The notes beneath the pieces were generated by a model. That model was not told the origin of the DNA. It worked only from the letters and a program-made list of their open reading frames with translations, and searched no databases. From Macrostomum lignano (taxonomy: Eukaryota), in contig NIVC01000514.1 in the NCBI GenBank assembly GCA_002269645.1, forward strand, positions 124,001 to 188,000: DNA of 64,000 nt. Direction: 5' to 3'. Positions 17,434-51,200 of the stretch are shown here, one piece after another. The translations under genes and the position numbers were made by a program. The stretch's first letter is position 1. The number at the start of each line of letters is the position of its first letter.

Positions 17434-28595
<11,162 letters not shown>

Positions 28596-28679
28596 GCGAC
28601 TCAACGGCCAATCCCGCCTGATTTGGACAGTCTTTGACTCCTAGCAACTGACTTTTGGCTCGCTAGGACTCATGAACTT

Positions 28680-29048
28680 TCGGGACTCTTCGGCTCTCAG
28701 TGCGTGACCAGGGAATTCACTGGGACTCTTCGGCTCTCAGTGCGTGACCAGGGAATTCACTGGGACTCTTCGGCTCTCAGTGCGTGACCAGGGAATTCAC
28801 TGGGACTCTTCGGCTCTCAGTGCGTGACCAGGGAATTCACTGGGACTCTTCGGCTCTCAGTGCGTGACCAGGGAATTCACTGGGACTCTTCGGCTCTCAG
28901 TGCGTGACCAGGGAATTCACTGGGACTCTTCGGCTCTCAGTGCGTGACCAGGGAATTCACTGGGACTCTTCGGCTCTCAGTGCGTGACCAGGGAATTCAC
29001 TGGGACTCTTCGGCTCTCAGTGCGTGACCAGGGAATTCACTGGGACTC
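28680..29048. repeat. 40-bp perfect tandem repeat (tgggactcttcggctctcagtgcgtgaccagggaattcac), about 9 copies, downstream of the iGluR-A stop
   Basis: Identical units with no spacers. Confidence 0.95.
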
Positions 29049-29249
29049 TGCTTGAAATGCGTGGCAAAGATTTGTTTAAAACAATCTCGCACATTGTCTG
29101 CCCAGCCATTGAATAATTAACCGCTGCTTTGACTGCGCAGATAAATCTGTAGCTTTGAGAAATCCAGACCCACCGCTGCTGCGTCTGCTCACATTTCTGG
29201 CTGAGAAGCGCGTCAGATGTTGTCTACTCTTTAATAACCAATCAAGGAT

Positions 29250-30990
29250 TTGATGGGAATGGGTGATGAGGAATGGGTGGTGGGGAATGGGTGATGGGAA
29301 TGGGTGATGGGGAATGGGTGGTGGGTGATGGGGAATGGGTGATGGGTGATGGGAATGGGTGATGGGGAATGGGTGGTGGGTGATGGGGAATGGTTGATGG
29401 GTGATGGGAATGGTTGATGGGGAATGGGTGGTGGGAATGGGTGGTGGGGAATGGGTGATGGGAATGGGTGATGGGGAATGGGTGGTGGGTGATGGGGAAT
29501 GGGTGATGGGTGATGGGAATGGGTGATGGGGAATGGGTGGTGGGAATGGGTGGTGGGGAATGGGTGATGGGAATGGGTGATGGGGAATGGGTGGTGGGTG
29601 ATGGGGAATGGGTGATGGGTGATGGGAATGGGTGATGGGGAATGGGTGGTGGGAATGGGTGGTGGGGAATGGGTGATGGGAATGGGTGATGAGGAATGGG
29701 TGGTGGGGAATGGGTGATGGGAATGGGTGATGGGGAATGGGTGGTGGGTGATGGGGAATGGGTGATGGGTGATGGGAATGGGTGATGGGGAATGGGTGGT
29801 GGGAATGGGTGATGGGAATGGGTGATGGGGAATGGGTGGTGGGTGATGGGGAATGGGTGATGGGTGATGGGAATGGGTGATGGGGAATGGGTGGTGGGAA
29901 TGGGTGGTGGGAATGGGTGATGGGGAATGGGTGATGGGGAATGGGTGATGGGGAATGGGTGATGGGGAATGGGTGATGGGGAATGGGTGATGGGGAATGG
30001 GTGGTGGGTGATGGGGAATGGGTGATGGGTGATGGGAATGGGTGATGGGGAATGGGTGGTGGGAATGGGTGATGGGGAATGGGTGATGGGGAATGGGTGA
30101 TGGGGAATGGGTGATGGGGAATGGGTGATGGGTGATGGGTGATGGGAATGGGTGATGGGGAATGGGTGGTGGGAATGGGTGGTGGGAATGGGTGATGGGG
30201 AATGGGTGATGGGGAATGGGTGATGGGGAATGGGTGATGGGGAATGGGTGGTGGGTGATGGGGAATGGGTGATGGGTGATGGGAATGGGTGATGGGGAAT
30301 GGGTGATGGGGAATGGGTGGTGGGGAATTGGTGATGGGGAATGGGTGGTGGGAATGGGTGGTGGGAATGGGTGATGGGGAATGGGTGATGGGGAATGGGT
30401 GGTGGGGAATGGGTGGTGGGGAATGGGTGATGGGGAATGGGTGGTGGGTGATGGGGAATGGGTGATGGGTGATGGGAATGGGTGATGGGGAATGGGTGAT
30501 GGGGAATGGGTGGTGGGGAATGGGTGGTGGGGAATGGGTGATGGGAATGGGTGATGGGAATGGGTGATGGGCGATGGGGAATGGGTGATGGGTGATGGGG
30601 AATGGGTGATGGGTGATGGGAATGGGTGATGGGGAATGGGTGGTGGGTGATGGGGAATGGGTGATGGGTGATGGGAATGGGTGATGGGGAATGGGTGATG
30701 GGGAATGGGTGGTGGGGAATGGGTGATGGGGAATGGGTGATGGGAATGGGTGATGGGAATGGGTGATGGGCGATGGGGAATGGGTGATGGGTGATGGGGA
30801 ATGGGTGATGGGTGATGGGAATGGGTGATGGGGAATGGGTGATGGGGAATCGGTGTTGAGGAATCGGTGATGAGAAATCAGTGATGGGGAATCGGTGATA
30901 GGGAATCGGTGATAGGGAATCAGTGATGGGGAATCAGTGATGGGGAATCAGTGATGGGGAATCAGTGATGGGGAATCAGTGATGGGGAAT
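29250..30990. repeat. G-rich satellite (GGGAATGGGTGATG variants), dense G-quadruplex motif
   Basis: Continuous GGG runs separated by 2-5 nt over about 1.7 kb. Confidence 0.95.
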
Positions 30991-31423
30991 CGGTGATAGG
31001 GATCGCAATAAGTGATGGGGAACGGGTCCTGGTCAATCCATCCGTGGCCCAGAAGCGGCCCGCATTCCCAGTACCTGCCGACTGCCATTAGAGTATTCAA
31101 ACAAAGGGCAGCTCGCGGTCCTCTGAAACTCATTTGTCTCCCCCCATCAGAGCCGTGGAAAATTCCGTCACCGGTTGCTGTCAGCCGGAGAGGCACTCCG
31201 CCGCTCATGCGGGAGTCGGGGCGCCCGCCAGCAATTAACGCAAAATGCATTTGCTCAGGCGCCCGGTGGGCTATAAACATTGGGGAGCGGCTAATGGCTT
31301 CTGGCCAAGGAGTTCTGGGCCTGCAGTCTGGGGTTGGGGAACTCCTGCGAAACCTCATTGCCACTAATTAGGGTAGGGGCAGGAGAGGGCACCTGCCCCC
31401 TGCCATAGCGATCGGCGCTTAAA

Positions 31424-32111
31424 CAAGGACTGCTCAAGTACAAAGGACGAGAAACTACATTTCTGAGAAAAGTTCAGGAGGCCGGTTTTCACCGAGAAAC
31501 GCACTACGGAGATAGGAAGTTTTCATTTTTTCAGCACAAAAATTGTAATTCATTCGATAGGAGGCAGGCTTAACGTTTACATTTTGATATGTTGTTCCTT
31601 TCTTATAGCTCTATTAATATTTGTAAAGCTTTTCGTTCAGAAAATTAAAATTCTGTGTCATTTTTTTATTCTACGTACATCTCCTCTACCTAAAAATCAT
31701 AAAAATGCATGGCACAGAACGAATCTTTGGTTTTTTCAATCTATCTCATCATATTTTGTTACACATATTTGCTACACAGCCAGCTAAAAATGATAAAATC
31801 GACTCATAAAACCAAAGAGCCGAGCCGTGCCATTTTAACGGTTTTTAGGCACAGGACATGGGCAATAAAAAATTAACATAGAATCCTGATTTTTTGAACG
31901 AGAAGCTTTATGAATATTGATAGAGCAATAAGAAAGACACAGAATATCAAGAGATGAACTTTGGGTCTGCCTACTATCAAAAGCAATAACAATTTTTGTG
32001 CTGAAAAAATAAACATGTCCTATCTCCGTGGGGTCTTTTTCGGCGAAAACCAGCCTCCTTAACATTTTCTTAGAAACGTAGTTTCCCGTCTTTCTACTTG
32101 AGCAGTCCTTG
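31424..32111. mobile_element. Foldback/MITE-like element with about 290-bp imperfect inverted arms
   Basis: caaggactgctcaagta at 31424 mirrored by tacttgagcagtccttg ending at 32111; inverted similarity continues inward to about 31715/31822. Confidence 0.65.
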
Positions 32112-32709
32112 CGCCTAAACTGCAGTGGACGAGCCATCCAGGGAAGGTCAAAGGGGGGTCAGTTGCCCCCCAGGTGAAAATGAGTGGTCATGTGGCGCTA
32201 CAGCCAGCCTCCTCCAGCAGAACCGCTCGGCTCCGCTCATCGGCGGCTGAATCGGAGTTTTCAAACTGCTCAGAGGAGTCGGGGCGGATTAGTTTTCCTT
32301 GTGCCAGCCCGCAGTTAAGAAAGCATTGCTGCGCGCCTCCTGCCCAGCCCCTTGATATTCCATATCCCATCCATCCTCCCGTGAGCTCAGGGTGAGTCAA
32401 GAGCCTGCTTGGGTATCTAAGAGGAACTGGCTACCTGAGATCCCAGGGGCTTCCCCCTGAGCCAGGGAGGCCTGAACTAGCATCTGGACTGGAAGCTCCT
32501 CCTCAGTACCCGCATTTCAGGCGCCCTCTGAAATGAGGAATCCGCTGTGGGGCGGAGCGTGTGCTCACCCGGAACATCTTGTGTTTACATTTTTACTATC
32601 AAAATTAAAAACATCGAGATTATTGACTTTTTCGTACAATTGAAAACGGCATTTAACAATTCATGTAAAATGTAATAAATATTGCATCCTGTCGTACATT
32701 CCATTCCAT

Positions 32710-32835
32710 TCCGTGACGCAGAGACTCCGTGACGCAGAGACTCCGTGACGCAGAGACTCCGTGACGCAGAGACTCCGTGACGCAGAGACTCCGTGACGCA
32801 GAGACTCCGTGACGCAGAGACTCCGTGACGCAGAG
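32710..32835. repeat. 16-bp tandem repeat (ccgtgacgcagagact)
   Basis: Visible units. Confidence 0.9.
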
Positions 32836-33068
32836 ACTCGGCCCTCTCGAGTCTGAGGATGAGCTTTTAAGGAGAGCCCTACTCCAGACTCTGCTCCCAG
32901 ATCTCCTTGACCCAGCGCGCTCCCCTATCCGCCAGCATCTCTGCCGGGTGACAGGTGCATCCATAATTTATCCCAATGGGATAATAATCCGCGTCCCAGC
33001 CCCAGTCAATAGGAAAAATTCCCAGATCCCCCCCCCCCGATCTCCAGTCCGGCGCCACCGGCCAGGCC

Positions 33069-33075
33069 TATAAAA
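33069..33075 (+). promoter_or_regulatory. Putative TATA box of iGluR-B
   Basis: TATAAAA about 130 nt upstream of the ATG at 33206. Confidence 0.45.
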
Positions 33076-33205
33076 CTGGCTGCGCTGAGCTGGGGCTCAC
33101 TGACTCTGAGCTCACTGACTCTGTGCTCACCGACTCTGAGCTCACTGACTCTGTGCTCACCGACTCTGAGCTCACTGACTCGCCACCGCCCTGCACCGAG
33201 ACGTC

Positions 33206-36200
33206 ATGAGCTGCCGACTGCTGACGCTGCTGCTGCTCGCCTGCTGCTGCTGCCTGGCCGCATCCCAGGCCGGAGCGGCCGACCTTGAGAACCGAGAGCT
33301 CCGCGTTGTCACCATCACGGTGAGCTGGGAGACCCTCAATGCTGGATTGCGTATTGAGTCTGGGTTAACGGTTGCCAAATCCCAGAGTCCAGAACATCTC
33401 AGAATTATAGTGTCAGGGCGTTTATTCCCCGTAGGCCCATTAACTATTAATACTGAGCCCTGAACCCTGAACCCTGTATGTACCCTAAATCCTTAACCCT
33501 GAACTCTGAACCCTAAACCCTAAACGCTGAAGCCTTGAATCTTGAAATCTGAACCCTGGACCCTAGACCCTAGACCCTAGACCCTAGACCCTGGGCCCTG
33601 GATCCTGAAATCTGAACCCTGGACCCTGAACCCTGAAGTCTGAACACTGAACCCTGGACCTTGAACTCTAAACCCTGAACCCTGAACCCTGGACCCTAGA
33701 CCCTGGACCCTGGACCCTGGACCCTGGACCCTGAACCCTGGACCCTTGGTTTGAAGAGTAAAGGTTTTCAAAGGTTTCAAGGTTTCAAACCAAAGCTGAA
33801 CCCTGAACCCTGTACCCTGAACCCTGAAACCTGTACCCTGGACCCTGTACCTTAAATCCTGAACCCTGAACCCTGTACCCTGTACCCTGAACCCTGGACC
33901 CTGGACCCTGGACCCTGGACCCAACCCTGAACCCTGAACCCTGAACCCTGAATCCTGAAATCCGAACCCTGAACCCTGGACCCTAGACCCTGAGCCCGGG
34001 AACCCTGAACCCGAACCCTGTATCCTGAACTCTAAACCCTGAACCCTGACCTGAGCCTTGAGCCCTTTGTATTGAACCCTGGTCCAGTCCCCAACTGTGA
34101 ACCCTAAAATCTTAATTCGAACACTGTAAACTAAACCTAAGCGCTAGCCACGCCCCATCCGATAAACGCTACGTGCAGCAAAAGCCCTTCGTGATGCGGG
34201 TGGAAGGCTCGGAACCGGTCAGATACGTGGGCTTCTACATCGACCTGCTGAACCTCCTGCAGCGGGAGCTGAAATTTCGCTACCGAATCTACGAGGTAGC
34301 CGACAGCAGGTTCGGATCCCGCTCGCCGAAGGGGGTCTGGAACGGCCTGATGGGCGACATCGTGAACAAGGTGGGTGATGGAAGTAAGAGAAGATGCGAA
34401 CGATGCGAGTCTGTGACCGCAGCGGGGTTCGGTTGGAGTGTTTTATCAAGTTGATCGACTTTGAGTTTAGAGGAAAATTCTGCTCAAGTCTGGCGTGCGA
34501 GTCACTGGGTGACAGTCTGTGTGAGCCACTCGGTGACAGTCTGTGTGAGTCACTCGGTGACAGTCCGTGTGAGTCACTGGGTGACAGTCCGTGTGAGCCA
34601 CTCGGTGACAGTCTGTGTGAGCCACTCGGTGACAGTCTGTGTGAGTCACTCGGTGACAGTCTGTGTGAGTCACTGGGTGACAGTCTGTGTGAGTCACTCG
34701 GTGACAGTCTGTGTGAGTCACTCGGCGACAGTCTGTGTGAGTCACTCGGTGACAGTCCGTGTGAGTCACTGGGTGACAGTCCGTGTGAGCCACTCGGTGA
34801 CAGTCTGTGTGAGCCACTCGGTGACAGTCTGTGTGAGTCACTCGGTGACAGTCTGTGTGAGTCACTGGGTGACAGTCTGTGTGAGTCACTCGGTGACAGT
34901 CTGTGTGAGTCACTCGGTGACAGTCTGTGTGAGTCACTGGGTGACAGTCTGTGTGAGTCACTCGGTGACAGTCTGTGTGAGTCACTGGGTGACAGTCTGT
35001 GTGAGTCACTCGGTGACAGTCTGTGTGAGTCACTCGGTGACAGTCTGTGTGAGTCACTCGGCGACAGTCTGTGTGAGTCACTGGGTGACAGTCCGTGTGA
35101 GCCACTCGGTGACAGTCTGTGTGAGCCACTCGGTGACAGTCTGTGTGGATCACGGGGTGACAGTCTGTGTGAGTCACTCGGTGACAGTCTGTGTGAGCCA
35201 CTCGGTGACAGTCTGTGTGAGCCACTCGGTGACAGTCTGTGTGAGTCACTCGGTGACAGTCTGTGTGAGTCACTGGGTGACAGTCTGTGTGAGTCACTCG
35301 GTGACAGTCTGTGTGAGTCACTGGGTGACAGTCTGTGTGAGTCACTGGGTGACAGTCTGTGTGAGTCACTCGGTGACAGTCTGTGTGAGTCACTCGGCGA
35401 CAGTCTGTGAGTCACTGGGTGACAGTCTGTGTGAGTCACTGGGTCACAGAAGCCAGCCACCTGTCCCGCAGACGGCAGACCTGACCCTGGCCACTCTGCG
35501 CATCATGCCCAAAAGGCTGGAAGCCGTGGACTTCACGCTGCCGGTCTCCTCCTCGGGCCTGTCGCTGCTGTACAAGGAGGCGGCCTCGCAGACCTTGCAG
35601 ACCTCGCAGGCCGCCCTGCTGCTGCAGCCGTTCGCCGCCTCGGTGAGTTCTGCGGTTCACTGGACACTGACCGAATCACTCGGCCCTAGCTAGCTGTGAC
35701 TGGGGCCCCGATCAGCAGACAGGTGCCACCCAAAGGTCCTGCTATCTGGAAGTTTCCAAAGGTCCCGAAGGTCTCCTCACAGGCATTCAACATTGTGCAA
35801 AATCATCTTGTTTAACTTTCCCCATAGACCTGGGTGCTGCTACTGCTGCTGTACATCTTCTTCTTCCACCTTTTTCTCGCCTCCCGGAGTAGGTGGCACC
35901 CAAGTTTCCCGGACCCTTACTCGCCGCAAATTCTCTCATGTCTCGCCATATTCGTCGTTGCCAGCCACCTCTTGCAATATCTGCCCTCTTTCCTCTTGCT
36001 TTTGTACATTCTCGCTACCATCCTCGGTGCTTCCTCATTCGTCGTTGGTCTCTCGCTTATCTGGTCGTTCGTTTCGCATCCCTTTCTGAGTCTTGCATAA
36101 TTTGATTTGCTTATCCATCTCTTGCAGCTGTTGCATTCTCTCCTGGTTCCCTCTACTCTGCCTCCTGTGCACCATTTCTCATGGTTTTTCCTCGTCGCTT

Positions 36201-39200
36201 CCGTCTTAAAAACGCTATCACACCTCTTGCAGTCCATTCTTATTCCGGTCTCTTGTCTGTGCATACGTTCCTGTGGATGGCTAGTCCTTCTCTTGATCTG
36301 CATATTTTCTCGCATCCGTCCTCCCAGCACCTGAAGCCAATGAGTTCGTTTTCCTCCATTGGTAGTTCTCTTTGTCCGTTCTGGTTTTCTGGTTCTTCTT
36401 CGGCTCTTCCCTTGGTTTTACTTCTCTCTTGTTCAATCGTATCCCACTCGGCGTCCCGATCTTTGATGATTTCCCTCCACTTCTCTTTTGTCCGCGAGCT
36501 GTCCGACTCTGAGTGGGTCGAGTTTCTAATGAGTTTTCTCCAGTACGTAATTATCGTAGTCATCCTTTTCTTTGGTCTTTTCATTGATTCTAATCTCTTG
36601 TTCCATCCCATGACACAGATTTTCGTTATGCTGGAGTCTGGCAATCTCCACGTGGCCTAGTCTCCTCCAGTGTGCCGTTTCGATTTTTCTTTGAATGCTT
36701 TTTATCCCGATTTCTCGTCTCACGTCCCACATATTAACCTGTCTTTCTTCCATCTCCCGCAGAGGTTCTTTAGTTTTTCTGCTCCAAATATATCTGTAGT
36801 ACTTACCCATAATTCTTTGGAGTTGATTGATCTAGCTTTTTTTGAAGTGTCTAGCTCCTGCGTTGAACGTGAGCGTGCTTTCGACGCAGGCTTCGATCTC
36901 TCTCGCTTGAGTGCGTTCGTTAGTCTGGTTCTTCTGAGTCGCTTCTTAACTTTTGCCCCGGATGTCTTCTTTGTCTCCGAGCCACAGCCCCAGCATTCGG
37001 ATTCTATTGCTCTCTGCTGTTCCTACTGTTGCTGTCTCTTCTTTCGCGTCGTTCGTTCTTTCTTGTAGCCATCCCAAGACTGTCTTCACCGTCGTTTCTT
37101 CTTCGATTTCTTTCTTTCCGCCAATCACCGCGGTATCATCCGCGAACAGGGAGCAGGTGATCCGCGTGGTGGTTGATTCTTCCGTGAACTTATAGTTTCT
37201 CTGTGGTGGTCAGTGTTTTCCTGGCAGATAGGTCCATTCGATCCCAACTTCTTCGCCTCTGTTTGCTGCTGTGGTCTTTCTAGCTGTTTCTGCCGCTCTC
37301 ATGACCGCCTGATGGTAGATGTTAAAAAGTACGGGTGAGGTCGCGCATCCTTCATGTAATCCCCTTTGTGAGAAAATATGTGACTATCCTCATCCTCCGT
37401 GTGTACTTTGTATGCGGTGTGCTCATGTAGGCCCTTTAGTTTCTCGATCATTTTGTCTGGCATCTCGTGGTGTGCGAGTAGTCGCCAGAGTGCTGGCTTG
37501 TTTACTCTCGGATATTGAAGTACTTATGGTTTTCTCGGGGTGGCCTGTTAGGTCTTTGAAACCCACCGCTGCCACCAGTGAAGTACTTATGGTTGTCTCG
37601 GGGTTTCTCCTGCTGTCCAGCGCAGTGACTTGGGCTCTCCGTCTTCTCACTCGGAAGCCTTCTTAACTCTTAGTAGCGTAGGTAGTGCTGCCACCAGTTC
37701 CTTCAGGTCTCGGCCTTCGATGAGGTGAGCTTCCCGTCGGAACGAAATAACGAAGTCAACGAACTCGAAGGCGTCTCGTCAGCAGCACCTGCCGGGCTTG
37801 GTTGGTATGGGAGGGTTGAGTTAGCCTCTCGTAGGCTTGGGGTTTGCTTTAGTAGGGTCTCAGTCAGACCAGCACAAGCAGATTTAGTGTACGCAAAGAG
37901 GGGACTTAGTTCAGTCAATAGCGCACGCGGGCTCTTAGAAGTTTAGAGGCAAGCAAAGACTCCGGCAAAGACTCCTTGACGGAAACAAGGAGGAGAGGGG
38001 TCCTATTTATAGCCGGGATTCTCCCGCGCACAAGACCTCGTGACTTGTTCTATTTTTAGAACTGACGTCACTTGAGGTCTCGGGGCAGGGTCTCAGTGCG
38101 CGCAAGACCTCGTGACTCGTTCTATTTTTAGAACTGACGTAACTTGAGGTCTCCGGCCAGAGTACACGCGGCTGTGACTCAGTTGCTATTTTTAGCAACA
38201 TGAGTCACTCCTCTCCTTAGAGAAAGGAGGGGTCCGAAAGCACGTGATTCTCCCGGTAAACAGGGCCAACGAGTGCAGTAAACATGTTTACTGCACTTTA
38301 AGACTCCAAGAACGCAAGATCTGTCATGTGACTTGCTCACAAGACAGAGGAAAACGGGACGGGAACGAAACAGAGACAGCCCACAGCAGAGAAGCCGAGT
38401 GCTGAGAACAGAGACGCAGAAGGGCAGAACAGGCCAAGGGCAGCAACAGACAGCCAGGGGGGCGGGAAGCTGACCAGCGGCAGACAGCAACCCTGGGCGA
38501 GGGCGAGGGAGACTGCTGACAAAGGGGGACGCCAAACACTAAACTAGCGGCTCACTACAATATGCTTTTTTTAGATCCAGCAATTTAGCCACGGTATCGC
38601 TGTCTCCGCTAACTTCATCTTTCCCATTCTCTGCATTTCCGCTGATCTTTTGGTCAGTTTCGCGTCTTCCTGTAGTCTGAGGATGATCTGAGTGGCGTCC
38701 ATCGTCGACCTGTCCCGCCTGAAACCCGCTTGATTCTCGTCCAGGCAGTTGATCCCTTCCGCCCACCTGTTGATTCGGGTTGCGATAATCTTGCCAAGAA
38801 CCTACTTGTCATCGGTAGTAGGCAGACACCCCGATAATTGTTTAGGTCTTTTTTGTCTCCTTTTTTGTGTAACGGGATGATGAGTCCTAGCTTTTGTCCT
38901 TCTCCCCATTTCGTCGCCGATTCCGTCCACAGTCTGGTTATTTCAATGAGACATTCTTCTCTTACTGTTTCACACGCTGTCTTGATGTAGATCAGTCTTA
39001 ATTCGTCTTCTCCTGGTGCGCCGTTTTTCATTTTGTTCAGTTCTGTCGTGCCGTGCAGTTGGCATAAAGAAACTCAGGGTTTATTTTAACTAGCAAGTAG
39101 CCTATTTAATAATAATGACTCGAGCAGTGGCTGAGAGAACACCAAAATAGAGTCACGTGATGACAATCAACTACGTACAACTACATGGAAGCTTAGGGGT

Positions 39201-41944
39201 ATGGCCAGTCAGAGCGAAGGGAGAGGAAAGAATGGTGTGCACGTACGATGCACGTACATAGCATAAGTTAGTTAGTTAGCCAGTGCCTAGAGCTCAGCGC
39301 TCCGGAACCACAAGTTCTCTTTCGAATTCCTTCCAGGTGATTGGATCCATTAAGGCCTGGTTTGCTTGCTCTCTAAGTTTCAACATTCAGCATTGTGCAA
39401 AATTATCTTGTTTTACTCTCCCCATAGACCTGGGTGCTGCTACTGCTGGTGTACATTATCTACCTCGGCCTGGCCTTCGTCCTCTTCCTGCTGTCCCCCT
39501 ACGAACTGGGCGGTAGCGCCGGCAGCGCCTCCTCGACCGTCGCCAAAGCGAGGAAAGCCGGCTGCGGAGCCTTCGCGTTCATCACTGGCGGCCTCTTCAT
39601 CCAGGGTGAGTATGCAGTCGTGGATTTTTAACCTGTGATGCTAAATTTGTGATGTTTAATCTGTGGTGTTTAATCTGTGATGTTTAATCTGTGATGTTTA
39701 TCTGTGATGTTTAATCTGTGATGTTTAATCTGTGATGTTTATCTGTGATGTTTATCTGTGATGTTTATCTGTGATGTTTAATCTGTGATGTTTAATCTGT
39801 GATGTTTAATCTGTGATGTTTATCTGTGATGTTTAATCTGTGGTGTTTAATCTGTGATGTTTATCTGTGATGTTTAATCTGTGATGTTTAATCTGTGATG
39901 TTTAATCTGTGATGTTTATCTGTGATGTTTATCTGTGATGTTTATCTGTGATGTTTAATCTGTGATGTTTAATCTGTGATGTTTAATCTGTGATGTTTAT
40001 CTGTGGTGTTTAATCTGTGATGTTTATCTGTGATGTTTAATCTGTGATGTTTAATCTGTGATGTTTATCTGTGATGTTTATCTGTGATGTTTATCTGTGA
40101 TGTTTATCTGTGATGTTTATCTGTGATGTTTAATCTGTGATGTTTAATCTGTGATGTTTAATCTGTGATGTTTAATCCGTGTTCTGCGAATTCCCGAAAC
40201 ACTCAGGCTTCGCGCGCACCCCGAAGGCCCCCTCGGCCCGCGCCTTGGCCTTCGCCTGGTGGCTGTTCGCCCTGGCCACCGCCTGCTGCTACACGGCCGG
40301 CCTGGCGACCCGCCTGATGGCCGGCCGCCCGACGGCTTCCGCCAAGTTCGGCAGCCTGCAGGAGCTGATGGCGCAGTCAAAAGTGCCTTACGGAGTGCTG
40401 GCCGGCGGCTCCACCGCCACCATGCTGGCTGTGAGTAACCTGGCGGGCCCTGGACCTGATATCCTGAATCTGACACCCTGGATCTGACACCCTGGATCTG
40501 ACACCCTGGATCTGACACCCTGGATCTGACACCCTGGATCTGACACCCTGGATCTGACACCCTGGATCTGACACCCTGGATCTGACACCCTGGATCTGAC
40601 ACCCTGGATCTGACACCCTGGATCTGACACCCTGGATCTGACACCCTGGATCTGACACCCTGGATCTGACACCCTGGATCTGACACCCTGGATCTGACAC
40701 CCTGGATCTGACACCCTGGATCTGACACCCTGGATCTGACACCCTGGATCTGACACCCTGGATCTGACACCCTGGATCTGACACCCTGGATCTGACACCC
40801 TGGATCTGACACCCTGGATCTGACACCCTGGATCTGACACCCTGGATCTGACACCCTGGATCTGACACCCTCGATAGTGCTCTAAAACTATTAAGCACGG
40901 ACGTCCTGCCCGGAAAATTTCAGAACTCCAACATTCCCGAGTTCCTGGCCGTCAACGCCTTCCTGAGCCGCAATCCGAGCTGGAACGTCAAGAGCACTGA
41001 GGACGGACTGCAGCGCGTGAGGAAGGGCGGCTACGTCTGGATTGCCGAGGGCATCACCGCCGACTACCACGGCATGACCGAGTGTGAGCTGGTGTCCTCG
41101 CCCACCGGCCTCGCCACCGTGGACATCGGCCTGGCCATTGCCAAGGGTACGTCAGCGGGAGCTTAGACACCTGCAGACACCTGCAGACACCCTCAGACAC
41201 CTGCAGACACCCTCAGACACCTGCAGACACCCTCAGACACCTGCAGACACCCTCAGACACCTGCAGACACCCTCAGACACCTGCAGACACCCTCAGACAC
41301 CTGCAGACACCCTCAGACACCTGCAGACACCCTCAGACACCTGCAGACACCCTCAGACACCTGCAGACACCCTCACACACCTGCAGACACCCTCAGACAC
41401 CTGCAGACACCCTAAAACACCTTCGCAAATACCCTAGCAGGCACCCTGACAGACATCCTCCCCGATGCGATCCCGCAGGCTCCAACCTGAAGCAGGCATT
41501 CGACGCGGCCATCCTGAAGGTCAAGGCCAACGGCGAGCTGGACAGCATGAAGAGCCGCTGGTGGCAGAAAAACGACGACCAGTGCGCCGCCAAGGCCTCC
41601 GACTGGCCCAGCCCGCTGGCCCCTGGCGACCTGCTCGGCCTCTACCTGGTGCTGCTGCTCGGCTGCCTCGCCGCCTTCGTTGCCCTGCCCTTGGAATTTA
41701 TGCTGAAGGCTGCCGGACTGCCCTTTTGCGGGCGAGGCCAGCAGGTCTGAGAGCTCTGCTTGGCAATTCCGTCCCTTGCATTCAATTTCAAGTTTTCTCC
41801 GCCACTCCAAATGCCCCGCAGGCCGAGCAGCCGGCCGCCGCCGCCGCCGCTGCCCAGGATAAGCCAGGCAAAGACGCCGGTGCCGTTGCCACAGCCGGAT
41901 CGGAGGAGAAGCAGCCGGAGCCGGAGTCCAAACCTCTGGTTTAA
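33206..41944 (+). CDS. Divergent ATD-less ionotropic glutamate receptor-like subunit (iGluR-B), 8 exons, about 496 aa
   Basis: Exons 33206-33319, 34179-34370, 35472-35642, 39428-39605, 40207-40430, 40924-41146, 41479-41744, 41822-41944 (1491 nt, all GT-AG, phases compatible). Signal peptide then LENRELRVVTI, GFYIDLL, WNGLMGDIV, ADLTLATLRIMPKRLEAVDFT, M1, FITGGLFIQG, WWLFAL..CYTAGLATRLM, GGST, WIAEG, RWW..C, M4. Confidence 0.88.
33450..34060. repeat. Heptamer minisatellite (gaaccct/ggaccct), telomere-like
   Basis: Visible CCCTGAA/CCCTAAA/CCCTGGA units in iGluR-B intron 1. Confidence 0.85.
34495..35440. repeat. 24-bp intronic tandem repeat (gtgacagtctgtgtgagtcactcg)
   Basis: Visible units; source of four long ORFs. 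Confidence 0.95.
35784..35856 (+). repeat. Left copy of a 73-bp direct repeat (LINE target-site duplication) containing the 3' splice site and start of the iGluR-B M1 exon
   Basis: Matches 39384-39456 with 5 mismatches (offset exactly 3600). Confidence 0.85.
37471..38559 (-). mobile_element. Solo LTR (about 1.09 kb) inserted in the LINE RT
   Basis: TG...CA termini; splits RT between DLKKAY and MPDKM; TATAAATA on the minus strand at 38004-38011; duplicated enhancer-like block; no TSD visible. Confidence 0.65.
39044..39312 (-). mobile_element. Solo LTR (269 bp) of the Gypsy family at 61675-64000
   Basis: TGTCGTG...ACCACA flanked by a perfect 5-bp TSD AGTTC (39039-39043, 39313-39317); aligns to 61675-61939. 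Confidence 0.92.
39384..39456 (+). repeat. Right copy of the 73-bp target-site duplication, continuing into the intact M1/pore exon
   Basis: Acceptor CCATAG|ACC at 39427/39428; exon open to the donor at 39606. Confidence 0.85.
39630..40175. repeat. 13-14 bp intronic tandem repeat (ctgtgatgtttaat)
   Basis: Visible units. Confidence 0.95.
40470..40870. repeat. 14-bp perfect intronic tandem repeat (tggatctgacaccc)
   Basis: Visible units. Confidence 0.95.
41165..41410. repeat. Intronic tandem repeat (cagacacctgcagacaccct)
   Basis: Visible units. Confidence 0.9.
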
Positions 41945-48297: not shown

Positions 48298-51200
48298 CTG
48301 GTTTTTTGGCTCCATGTCTCGCGACCGGGCAAATGAAATCCTCCTCAAGGAGTCTGTCGGCGTCTTCCTCATCCGGGCCAGCCTGTCTCAGCCCGGCGGA
48401 TTCGCTCTCAGCGTTCGGTGAGCTGCTCTGGGACTGCATGGGTCAGGGTGGGTCAAACACTTACGCTTTTGTAAGTCAGAGACACTGTCTAGTGGGTCAG
48501 AGACCCTCTGTCTAGTGGGTCAGAGACTCACTGTCTAGTGGGTCAGAGACTCACTGTCTAGTGGGTCAGAGCCTCACCGTCCAGTGGGTCAGAGACTCAC
48601 TGTCTAGTGGGTCAGAGACTCACTGTCTAGTGGGTCAGAGACTCACTGTCTAGTGGGTCAGAGACTCACCGTCCAGTGGGTCAGAGACCCTCTGTCTAGT
48701 GGGTCAGAGACTCACTGTCTAGTGGGTCAGAGACTCGCGGTCAAGTGGGTCATGGTACCTAGAGGTCTAGTGGGTCAGACTCCCAGTCAAGTGGGTCATG
48801 GTACTACAAGGTGAGGTATCTGATAAACTCAAAGTTCTGGGTCTTAGTACTGCTATTTGGCTGTCATCAGGAGCGATCAGTGTTCCAAGCAGGAGGCCCT
48901 GTGATGCCAGACCCCAGCTCACAGGCAGCCCAACCGCCCCGCAGTGACAAGGACAAGACCAACCACTACAAAATCGTGGCCTCAAAGCGGGTGGCCCACG
49001 ACGGCTACAAGCTCAAGATCGGCTCCAACGAGTTCTACTCAATGACTCAGCTGATCGATTTCTATAAAAACACCAAGCTGGCCGACTCAGTGCTCACCGT
49101 GCCCGTGAGTTACGAGTATGCTCTGTCTGCTCATTTACAGTACAGTGTACGCTCGTACTTCATAGTACTTCAGCTCATCATCCTGACTCTGGGCGAGGGC
49201 TGGCATAGCGCGCATAATCATTTTTTGGAAACATTTAGAAGTCGGCTGTTATCCATTTGTATCAACTTGGCCTGTCTGCAGATAGTAAAGATAGGGGAGA
49301 TAAGAGGAGGATAGAGGATATAGCAGAGGCGAGATAGTGAGAGCGGGATAGTAGAAGAAGGGGATAGTGGTATAGTAGAGGGGAATAGTGAGATAGTAGA
49401 GGGATAGAGGGGAATAGTGGGATAGTATAGTAGAGGGGGAGGGGGATAGTGGGATAGTAGATAGAGTGGGGGAGGGGGAGGGGGATAGTGGATAGTAGAT
49501 AGAGTGGGGAGGGGGAGGGGATAGTGGGATAGTAGATAGAGTGGGGGAGGGGGAGGGGGATAGTGGGATAGTGGGATAGAGTGGGGAGGGGGAGGGGGAT
49601 AGTGGGATAGTGGGATAGAGTGGGGGAGGGGGAGGGGGATAGTGGGATAGTAGATAGAGTGGGGGAGGGGGAGGGGGATAGTGGGATAGTGGGATAGAGT
49701 GGGGGAGGGGGAGGGGATAGTGGGATAGTAGATAGAGTGGGGGAGGGGGAGGGGATAGTGGGATAGTGGGATAGAGTGGGGGAGGGGGAGGGGATAGTGG
49801 GATAGTAGATAGAGTGGGGGAGGGGGAGGGGGATAGTGGGATAGTGGGATAGAGTGGGGGAGGGGGAGGGGGATAGTGGGATAGTAGATAGAGTGGGGGA
49901 GGGGAGGGGATAGTGGGATAGTAGATAGAGTGGGGGAGGGGATAGTGGGATAGTAGATAGGGTGGGGGAGGGGGAGGGGGATAGTGGGATAGTAGATAGA
50001 GTGGGGGAGGGGGAGGGGGATAGTGGGATAGTAGATAGAGTGGGGGAGGGGAGGGGGATAGTGGGATAGTGGGATAGAGTGGGGGAGGGGGAGGGGGATA
50101 GTGGGATAGTGGGATAGAGTGGGGGAGGGGGAGGGGGATAGTGGGATAGTAGATAGAGTGGGGGAGGGGGAGGGGATAGTGGGATAGTGGGATAGAGTGG
50201 GGGAGGGGGAGGGGATAGTGGGATAGTAGATAGAGTGGGGAGGGGGAGGGGATAGTGGGATAGTAGATAGAGTGGGGGAGGGGATAGTGGGATAGTAGAT
50301 AGGGTGGGGGAGGGGGAGGGGATAGTGGGATAGTAGATAGAGTGGGGGAGGGGGAGGGGATAGTGGGATAGTAGATAGAGGGGGGAAGGGGATAGTGGGA
50401 TAGTAGATAGAGGGGGGAGGGGGATAGTGGGATAGTATAGTAGAGGGGAAGATAGTATATAGTAGAGGGGGAGATAGTATATAGTAGAGGGGGAGATAGT
50501 ATATAGTAGAGGGGGAGATAGTATATAGTAGAGGGGGAGATAGTATATAGTAGAGGGGGAGATAGTATATAGTAGAGGGGGAGATAGTATATAGTAGAGG
50601 GGGAGATAGTATATAGTAGAGGGGGAAATAGTATATAGTAGAGGGGGAAATAGTATATAGTAGAGGGGGAGATAGTATATAGTAGAGGGGGAGATAGTAT
50701 ATAGTAGAGGGGGAGATAGTATATAGTAGAGGGGGAGATAGTATATAGTAGAGGGGGAGATAGTATATAGTAGAGGGGGAGATAGTATATAGTAGAGGGG
50801 GAGATAGTATATAGTAGAGGGGGAGATAGTATATAATAGCCGGTTTGAATTCAGTGGCCAGCTTCACTGCCAAGGCCAGTCGAAGGACAAATGCCTGAGA
50901 ACAGATTCACAGAATTGGCGGCTTGTGTGTTTTGTCCGCGCTATTCAGGCCAGATTGCAGTAGCCAAATGCCAACCAGCCACCTGCCCGTTTCTCTTACG
51001 GTTTCTGATAATTTTGCACCTCTCAGGCTGCCAAGCCCATGTACCGAGCCAAGTTCGACTTTAAAGTGGACCCGAGCGATCCCGTGAGTTGAAGCTATAC
51101 TGTGCAGGGCGGGCTGAGTTCTGTGTGAATGAGGTGAGTTCTGTGTGATTGGGGTGAGTTTTGTGAATGATTGAGTGCTGTGTGAATGATTGAGTTCTGT

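Follow-up and report, generated by a model that had tools for sequence, protein, structure and literature searches.

In GluD2, the Lurcher substitution A654T in the M3 gate motif gives a constitutively open channel (PMC7679134). A654 is the 'Lurcher hinge' used in gate opening and L652, Leu6 of the motif, is the L-hinge (PMC12520249). Threonine can also occupy the Lurcher site naturally: Drosophila IR76b, a variant ionotropic receptor (IR) that serves as co-receptor and salt receptor and has no typical amino-terminal domain (ATD), carries it and shows a constitutive Na+ current in HEK293T cells, which is attenuated by a T-to-A change (review PMC7882480). Trichoplax AKDF1 is a further natural leak member of the ionotropic glutamate receptors (iGluRs); it is blocked by ligands, and the cause is a change in the ligand-binding domain (LBD) (PMC12226733). 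ATD-less relatives with degenerate gates include C. elegans IR-like genes (PMC13293861) and an S. mansoni 'IR' of 513 aa (PMC5080760). Both ATD-less iGluR relatives with degenerate gates (tuning IRs included) and a natural Lurcher-site Thr, that of IR76b, are therefore already known. Here we analysed a stretch of 64,000 nucleotides from the flatworm Macrostomum lignano (contig NIVC01000514.1, positions 124,001 to 188,000, forward strand), called the window below, which contains an iGluR gene, iGluR-B, whose counterpart of the canonical gate motif SYTANLAAF reads CYTAGLATR.

The initial annotation of this gene had proposed a constitutively open, very low-threshold or ligand-closed channel, or a subunit that changes the gating of heteromers, an idea less new than it was presented, since natural leak iGluR relatives (IR76b and AKDF1) have been described. 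Our preferred reading, to which we give about an even chance (roughly 0.5), is that iGluR-B is an amino-acid-binding channel subunit in which Thr253 and Gly250 would make a low-barrier gate, partly compensated by co-evolved changes.

The gate motif and its Lurcher-site threonine

iGluR-B occupies positions 33206-41944 (+) of the window. It is an intact gene of 8 exons with a 496-aa product, modelled by tracing reading frames and splice signals; all introns are GT-AG and exon phases are compatible throughout. The features under study are located in exon 5:

40287..40313 (+), CYTAGLATR (residues 246-254), the M3 gate motif, read in frame within exon 5 and equivalent to SYTANLAAF
40308..40310 (+), Thr253, codon ACC, last but one of the nine motif residues and thus the Lurcher position

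The codons at 40287-40313 (tgc tac acg gcc ggc ctg gcg acc cgc) and their translation were exactly as the initial annotation had described them. The segment 'accytaglatrlmagrp' was aligned by HMMER without gaps to the M3 of GluK5 and GluK3. Since this alignment to SYTANLAAF is ungapped, Thr253 is homologous to the penultimate Ala of the motif, which is A654 in GluD2, and the proposed presence of a Thr at the Lurcher position was thereby confirmed. The correspondence from GluD2 to iGluR-B is T649 to T248, N651 to G250, L652 to L251, A653 to A252, A654 to T253 and F655 to R254, while T657, at the gate top, corresponds to Met256. Five of the nine canonical residues are kept (Y2, T3, A4, L6 and A7) and four are changed (S1C, N5G, A8T and F9R). 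iGluR-B thus clears the inclusion criterion of Ramos-Vicente et al. 2018, which asks for at least 4/9 SYTANLAAF residues conserved, with a motif that is still non-canonical. The M3-S2 linker that follows is 2 residues longer than that of the neighbouring receptor gene, iGluR-A.

Position 9 is aligned with less certainty than position 8. MAFFT alignment of iGluR-B with its M. lignano paralogue (described below) placed a 4-residue indel immediately past motif position 8, and the homology of Arg254 to Phe9 is for this reason less certain than that of Thr253 to Ala8. In GluA2, the side chain of F623 (motif position 9) faces the pre-M1/M4 collar and not the pore mouth. The F9R change had been taken to put a positive charge at the outer mouth of the channel: the arginine itself is present, whereas its location at the mouth is doubtful in view of the indel and of the F623 orientation.

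The closest database match to iGluR-B is BOX15_Mlig007793g1 (P0001), also from Macrostomum lignano, with 97-98% identity and the same exon structure. The sequence CCYTAGLATRL was identical in three independent M. lignano records, namely the window, a second genomic locus represented by this match (L001, in the same assembly, GCA_002269645.1) and UniRef A0A1I8G9G6 (P0176). Inside the motif, the L001 copy carries a synonymous GCC to GCT difference at Ala249. Over the whole coding sequence (CDS), the window and L001 copies differ at 16 synonymous and 11 non-synonymous positions and by one 9-bp indel, giving dS 0.046, dN 0.011 and dN/dS 0.24 (Fisher p=2.4e-4). No amino-acid difference was found from Ala157 to Tyr341, hence none in M1, the pore loop or M3. 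Introns were 81-96% identical between the two copies as compared to 98% for the CDS. As judged from this comparison, the coding sequence of iGluR-B is under purifying selection, and the neutral evolution that the initial annotation had allowed for is contradicted by the dN/dS ratio and the intact open reading frame (ORF).

These data also bear on another possible origin of CYTAGLATR, as a sequencing or assembly artefact or as part of a decaying pseudogene copy. Such an origin might be suggested by the richness of the locus in tandem repeats, by the reverse-transcriptase (RT) element with a duplicated acceptor site in intron 3, and by the many duplicated genes of M. lignano. However, the same motif was found in three independent records, one of them with an internal synonymous difference, ORF and canonical splice sites are intact in both genomic copies, and the RT element is intronic and present in both. 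Because of the identical motif, the intact ORF, the dN/dS ratio and the lower identity of introns than of CDS, we rejected both sequencing error and pseudogene decay, which we regard as very improbable.

A short receptor with a conserved pore and a variable gate

The exons of iGluR-B encode the following parts of the protein:

33206..33319 (+), exon 1, first S1 strand (LRVVTIT) preceded by start codon and signal peptide; ATD absent
34179..34370 (+), exon 2, S1 ligand-binding lobe
35472..35642 (+), exon 3, end of S1 with Arg117 (35514-35516), pre-M1
39428..39605 (+), exon 4, M1 and M2 pore loop ...ITGGLFIQG, with Q/R-site Ile217 at 39599-39601
40207..40430 (+), exon 5, end of the pore loop (FARTPK), M3 and gate motif, M3-S2 linker, start of S2 with Thr288 (40413-40415)
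40924..41146 (+), exon 6, S2 with Glu335 (41047-41049)
41479..41744 (+), exon 7, remainder of S2, then M4
41822..41944 (+), exon 8, Ala-rich tail at the C-terminus, KPLV end and stop codon

An initial 7-exon model ending in GQQV* was dropped in favour of this 8-exon form because the KPLV end is common to P0001, UniRef P0176, the paralogue (P0177) and a transcript (P0002). The C-terminus [KR]PLV (41933-41944 of the window) is kept in iGluR-B, the paralogue and P0002 despite Ala-rich tails that cannot be aligned. Such a conserved tetrapeptide may be a trafficking or anchoring signal.

Pfam recognized Lig_chan-Glu_bd (PF10613, 1.1e-28), Lig_chan (PF00060, 7.9e-16) and SBP_bac_3 in iGluR-B, and no ANF_receptor. 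The signal peptide leads straight into the first S1 strand (LRVVTIT-QKPFVM). In tblastn searches with ATD queries nothing was detected in 28000-33206, upstream of exon 1, and the same queries found ATD exons only in iGluR-A (20858-23589). The junction of signal peptide and S1, together with the absence of ATD exons from 28000-33206, shows that iGluR-B has no ATD. The superfamily topology S1-M1-M2(pore loop)-M3-S2-M4 is otherwise complete and both domains are present. Nearest among solved structures by HMMER were GluK5, GluK3 and GluK2 (E 4e-60 to 1e-55), followed by GluA1/2, and the best 60 sequence matches in the PDB were all GluK or GluA. The AlphaFold2 monomer model (mean predicted local distance difference test score 80.4) comprises the clamshell, M1, pore helix and M4, as well as a continuous M3 helix (227-257) that includes the gate motif. 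In Foldseek it matched LBD and transmembrane domain (TMD) chains of AMPA, kainate and delta receptors, a GluD2 chain among them, with E around 1e-29. The top Foldseek matches were open- or active-state structures, which we left uninterpreted as the query was a monomer and the root-mean-square deviation 10-17 Å. A place in the non-NMDA (AMPA/kainate/delta-like) branch is plausible from these matches, with the deep nodes of the neighbour-joining (NJ) tree unstable.

The ligand triad is kept in iGluR-B as R117/T288/E335. In the corresponding alignment columns R occurs in 149/150, T in 120/150 and E/D in 148/150 sequences. Amino-acid ligands are held by this triad through their alpha-carboxyl and alpha-amino groups. 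The pore loop, on the other hand, is non-canonical, with Ile at the Q/R site and Ala-Arg in place of the acidic +4 residue. The pattern [IV]QGFARTPK (39599-39605 and 40207-40226) is common to iGluR-B and its paralogue, and a pore loop of this kind would predict unusual ion selectivity and polyamine sensitivity. The initial annotation had viewed iGluR-B as a canonical iGluR with three changes in its gate. The substitutions are real; the canonical background is not, given the missing ATD and the non-canonical pore. GluK2/3/5 and iGluR-A share with iGluR-B the LBD-TMD fold and topology, but have an ATD, SYTANLAAF, Gln at the Q/R site and an acidic +4 residue.

The paralogue, Mlig028300g1 (P0177), was uncovered by a search with the transcript P0002 (run SRR28338165). 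It encodes 519 aa, is also ATD-less and is 43-44% identical to iGluR-B. P0002 itself is 43% identical to iGluR-B and 75% identical to P0177, which makes it an orthologue of the paralogue, and it was accordingly rejected as the closest orthologue of iGluR-B. The Mlig028300 gate reads CYIGNMGSV or CYIGNMGPV depending on the M. lignano record, and CYIANMVPV in P0002; at the Lurcher position Ser is found in P0177/P0178 and Pro in P0179/P0180. A 4-residue insertion, VLND, is located just past the motif. The two paralogues thus share the ATD-less layout, the pore core TGGLF[IV]QGFARTPK, the [KR]PLV end and the initial Cys-Tyr of the motif. Mlig028300 differs from iGluR-B in having no Thr at position 8, in the VLND insertion and in its location (L003 10001-14831, NIVC01001072.1), where its neighbour is an acetyltransferase gene and no iGluR-A-like gene is adjacent.

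Conservation between the paralogues is unevenly distributed. In the pore loop 15/22 residues are identical, including 14/15 of the core TGGLF[IV]QGFARTPK, and identity is 22/35 in pre-M1 plus M1 and 9/17 in lower M3. Identity falls to 3/9 in the gate motif and to 4/14 in the M3-S2 linker, which rank with the least conserved segments; both change rapidly and accept indels. In the aligned sequences of the iGluR-B/Mlig028300 lineage the pore is thus conserved and the gate variable, the opposite of canonical iGluRs.

Variability of the gate extends to other short receptors. An exhaustive HMMER search returned 5248 relatives, of which the best 150 were examined; 103 matches were classified as ATD-bearing, with at least 150 residues ahead of S1, and 46 as having a short N-terminus. 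SYTANLAAF was exact in 67/103 ATD-bearing and only 12/46 short-N-terminus relatives, and position 8 was Ala in 94/103 and 29/46, respectively; the other short relatives carry N, P, S, V, E, R, K or G at this position. Source animals of the named proteins in this divergent short group are nemerteans, an annelid, a brachiopod, a chiton, a cephalopod and a frog, the last with a 'glutamate receptor U1-like' protein. Like iGluR-B, many of them have a hydrophobic Q/R site followed by QG[FY]xxxP[RK], with no acidic +4 residue, and most keep the ligand-contacting Arg/Thr/Glu. The resemblance to U1-like proteins, of kainate-binding protein (KBP) type, and to spiralian short iGluRs (Tubulanus, Owenia, Lingula, Liolophura, Sepia, frog) includes the ATD-less layout, a length of about 420-540 aa, a triad that is mostly kept, the hydrophobic Q/R site and a degenerate M3 motif. 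However, these proteins are only 25-31% identical to iGluR-B and none has a position-8 Thr. iGluR-B and P0002 were grouped with 100% NJ bootstrap support. On this sequence evidence iGluR-B, a divergent iGluR subunit of IR/KBP-like type, belongs to a fast-evolving ATD-less group whose gate motif is generally degenerate, its deep placement being weak, and CYTAGLATR is the current state of a relaxed gate and not a canonical gate with three targeted mutations.

A relaxed gate could also mean that iGluR-B is no longer a channel and instead binds ligand or acts as a scaffold, as do the ATD-less kainate-binding proteins of vertebrates or GluD in its non-ionotropic roles, with gating no longer selected. 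Poor conservation of the gate motif and M3-S2 linker would be expected in this case, and the ATD-less layout recalls the U1-like/KBP-type proteins among the matches; the non-canonical Q/R and +4 sites and the conserved C-terminal [KR]PLV, which suggests anchoring, point the same way. Against it, the pore-loop core is nearly invariant (14/15) between paralogues that are only 43% identical overall, no non-synonymous difference affects M1, M2 or M3 between the M. lignano copies, and the four membrane segments are intact and, in the predicted structure, confidently modelled. We therefore find the loss of channel function rather improbable.

Gating of iGluR-B

In the preferred reading, that of a low-barrier gate, iGluR-B would still contribute to a cation pore gated by amino acids. 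Its role would most likely be that of a specialised subunit, sensory or modulatory, and it may act in heteromers. The Thr at the Lurcher hinge would lower the energy barrier of the closed gate. So would Gly250, at motif position 5, between the Ala4 and Leu6 hinges; Ala4 is the gating hinge of GluA2. Such a low barrier would be expected to result in high agonist sensitivity, slow deactivation or some basal current. Met256, Arg254 and the longer linker would likely offset part of the effect of the hinge substitutions. Constitutive or low-threshold gating of iGluR-B is, from this analysis, a reasonable hypothesis. A fully constitutive leak of Lurcher type is possible, but is not the default expectation.

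Several observations weigh against the low-barrier reading. Among the best relatives examined, position-8 Thr was found in 1/149 homologues (a Pieris protein, ATD-bearing) and in 0/46 with a short N-terminus. Given this rarity, simple drift is not demonstrated as the origin of Thr253, and selection for a Lurcher-like state is possible from the sequence comparison. A word-indexed protein search with full-length iGluR-B returned only P0001 and no orthologue from another species, and an M3-S2 profile search gave two uninformative fragments only, again with no iGluR-B orthologue in other species. In the NJ tree iGluR-B fell within a clade comprising 18 divergent relatives, most of them without an ATD and the named ones largely spiralian; this grouping was recovered in only 34% of bootstrap replicates with a different distance and we do not claim it.

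The Pieris protein, a 'kainate 2' receptor (P0073 and P0163-P0166), is a separate instance of a natural Thr at the Lurcher position. Its motif, SYTANLATL, is conserved in four species (rapae, brassicae, napi and macdunnoughi), and a related protein of Tuta absoluta has Ser at the same position (SYTANLASL).

The Lurcher phenotype is the obvious reference for Thr253. GluD2 Lurcher and the engineered AMPA, kainate and GLR-1 mutants have the same Ala to Thr change at the same position of the M3 helix. They are, however, single substitutions in otherwise canonical gates of ATD-bearing receptors, whereas in iGluR-B the surrounding gate, the gate top and the linker are changed as well, in a native sequence held under purifying selection. 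The initial annotation had relied on the transplant of the phenotype into AMPA and kainate subunits. The mapping of the site holds; a simple carry-over to iGluR-B does not, with a gate so divergent and a variable position 8. Transfer of the phenotype is uncertain because 4/9 motif residues, the gate top and the linker length differ and because relatives vary at position 8.

IR76b offers a closer natural comparison. Like iGluR-B it is a protostome subunit of the iGluR family with no typical ATD and a natural Thr at the Lurcher position. With respect to the features that define tuning-type IRs, iGluR-B is of protostome origin and lacks a typical ATD, but has not lost any of the Arg/Thr/Asp-Glu ligand contacts, where IRs lose at least one. 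This full Arg/Thr/Glu triad separates it from the variant IRs, which are typically without canonical glutamate-binding residues (PMC13293861). The feature characteristic of IR76b-like leak channels, Thr at the penultimate M3 motif position, is present as Thr253. Further differences from IR76b are the lineage-specific C1, G5, R9 and pore loop. The named database matches of iGluR-B bear only the generic labels 'kainate 2-like' or 'U1-like'.

One may then ask whether iGluR-B, by virtue of Thr253 together with Gly250 and Arg254, is a leak channel that is constitutively open or is inhibited by ligand, or the source of a tonic conductance in heteromers, in the manner of GluD2-Lurcher or IR76b. The Thr stands at the exact Lurcher position, A654 being a hinge of gate opening. 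There are precedents in the T-dependent constitutive Na+ current of IR76b (PMC7882480) and in AKDF1, a natural ligand-blocked leak iGluR (PMC12226733). Position-8 Thr is rare among homologues yet kept in all three M. lignano records, and the conserved pore loop suggests that a conducting pore matters. Nevertheless, the Lurcher effect is defined in canonical gates, from which iGluR-B departs at 4/9 motif residues, by the Thr to Met256 change and in linker length. Moreover, the paralogue has Ser or Pro at position 8 and the short-N-terminus relatives have many different residues, which suggests that the usual packing constraint is absent there. We consider an outright leak unlikely, although worth keeping in view.

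A broader and quite speculative proposal is that the Mlig007793/Mlig028300 lineage combines a conserved pore with an evolving M3 hinge residue (Thr/Ser/Pro) and linker length, giving tonic or ligand-inhibited channels whose basal conductance would be set by the Lurcher-site residue.

Setting of the gene and significance

iGluR-A, located at about 18500-28600 (+), is an ATD-bearing, kainate-like receptor gene whose motif lies 15 kb upstream of that of iGluR-B:

25467..25493 (+), canonical SYTANLAAF of iGluR-A, the only canonical copy in the six-frame translation of the window

This agrees with the canonical gate attributed to iGluR-A by the initial annotation. Boundaries of the LBD/TMD exons coincide between iGluR-A and iGluR-B. 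UniRef A0A1I8G9G6 joins the two in one read-through protein of 1271 aa, a fusion that is probably an annotation artefact. At L001 the gene order is as in the window, an ATD-bearing iGluR being followed by the iGluR-B copy and an SH2/SH3 gene. In the window, an exon-like ORF downstream of iGluR-B (48763-49311, +, approximate) contains YKIVASKRVAHDGYKLKIGSNEFYSMTQLIDFYKN. Scanned alone, it gave no Pfam match; it may be the same SH2/SH3 neighbour as at L001. P0010, considered as expression evidence for iGluR-B, was rejected since it is a mis-spliced UniRef model and not a recorded contig. A literature search for Mlig007793 found no paper mentioning this M. lignano gene.

The window consists of short GC-rich exons and of introns filled with micro- and minisatellites. 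Intron 3 of iGluR-B (35643-39427) contains the RT element:

35916-39300 (approximate, -), decayed and frameshifted reverse-transcriptase element in intron 3 of iGluR-B, outside the CDS

Pieces of RVT_1 were detected in three frames at consecutive profile positions, weakly and with lax Pfam thresholds, while strict thresholds on single ORF fragments of the element gave no match. The element is flanked by a 73-bp direct duplication, 93% identical (35784-35856 and 39384-39456), which repeats the splice acceptor together with 29 nt from the start of exon 4 and so creates a decoy acceptor at about 35828. The L001 copy also has the element, about 1 kb shorter through a deletion. The insertion therefore predates the divergence of the window and L001 copies. 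Tandem arrays, each different, occupy most of 5/7 iGluR-B introns:

33453-34049, intronic tandem array
34495-35449, intronic tandem array
39623-40181, intronic tandem array
40448-40875, intronic tandem array
41165-41422, intronic tandem array

Their units are the 7-mer CTGAACC, a 24-mer, the 14-mer GATGTTTAATCTGT, the 14-mer CCCTGGATCTGACA and a 20-mer. Array lengths differ between the window and L001, and the introns of iGluR-A look similar.

Returning to the receptor, ATD-less iGluR relatives such as iGluR-B relax the canonically most conserved motif of the family while keeping the pore loop, which is useful for annotation. They also call for caution, as phenotypes of point mutations should not be transferred to divergent paralogues. 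If the lineage of iGluR-B and Mlig028300 did consist of tonic channels, it would represent a flatworm parallel, of independent origin, to IR76b or Trichoplax AKDF1. If iGluR-B has a destabilised closed gate, it would count as a second natural 'Lurcher' among iGluRs, one that evolved independently, in an animal amenable to RNA interference and transgenesis. It would then provide a compact ATD-less subunit of about 50 kDa in which to study how the hinge residue and the linker length contribute to gating energetics.

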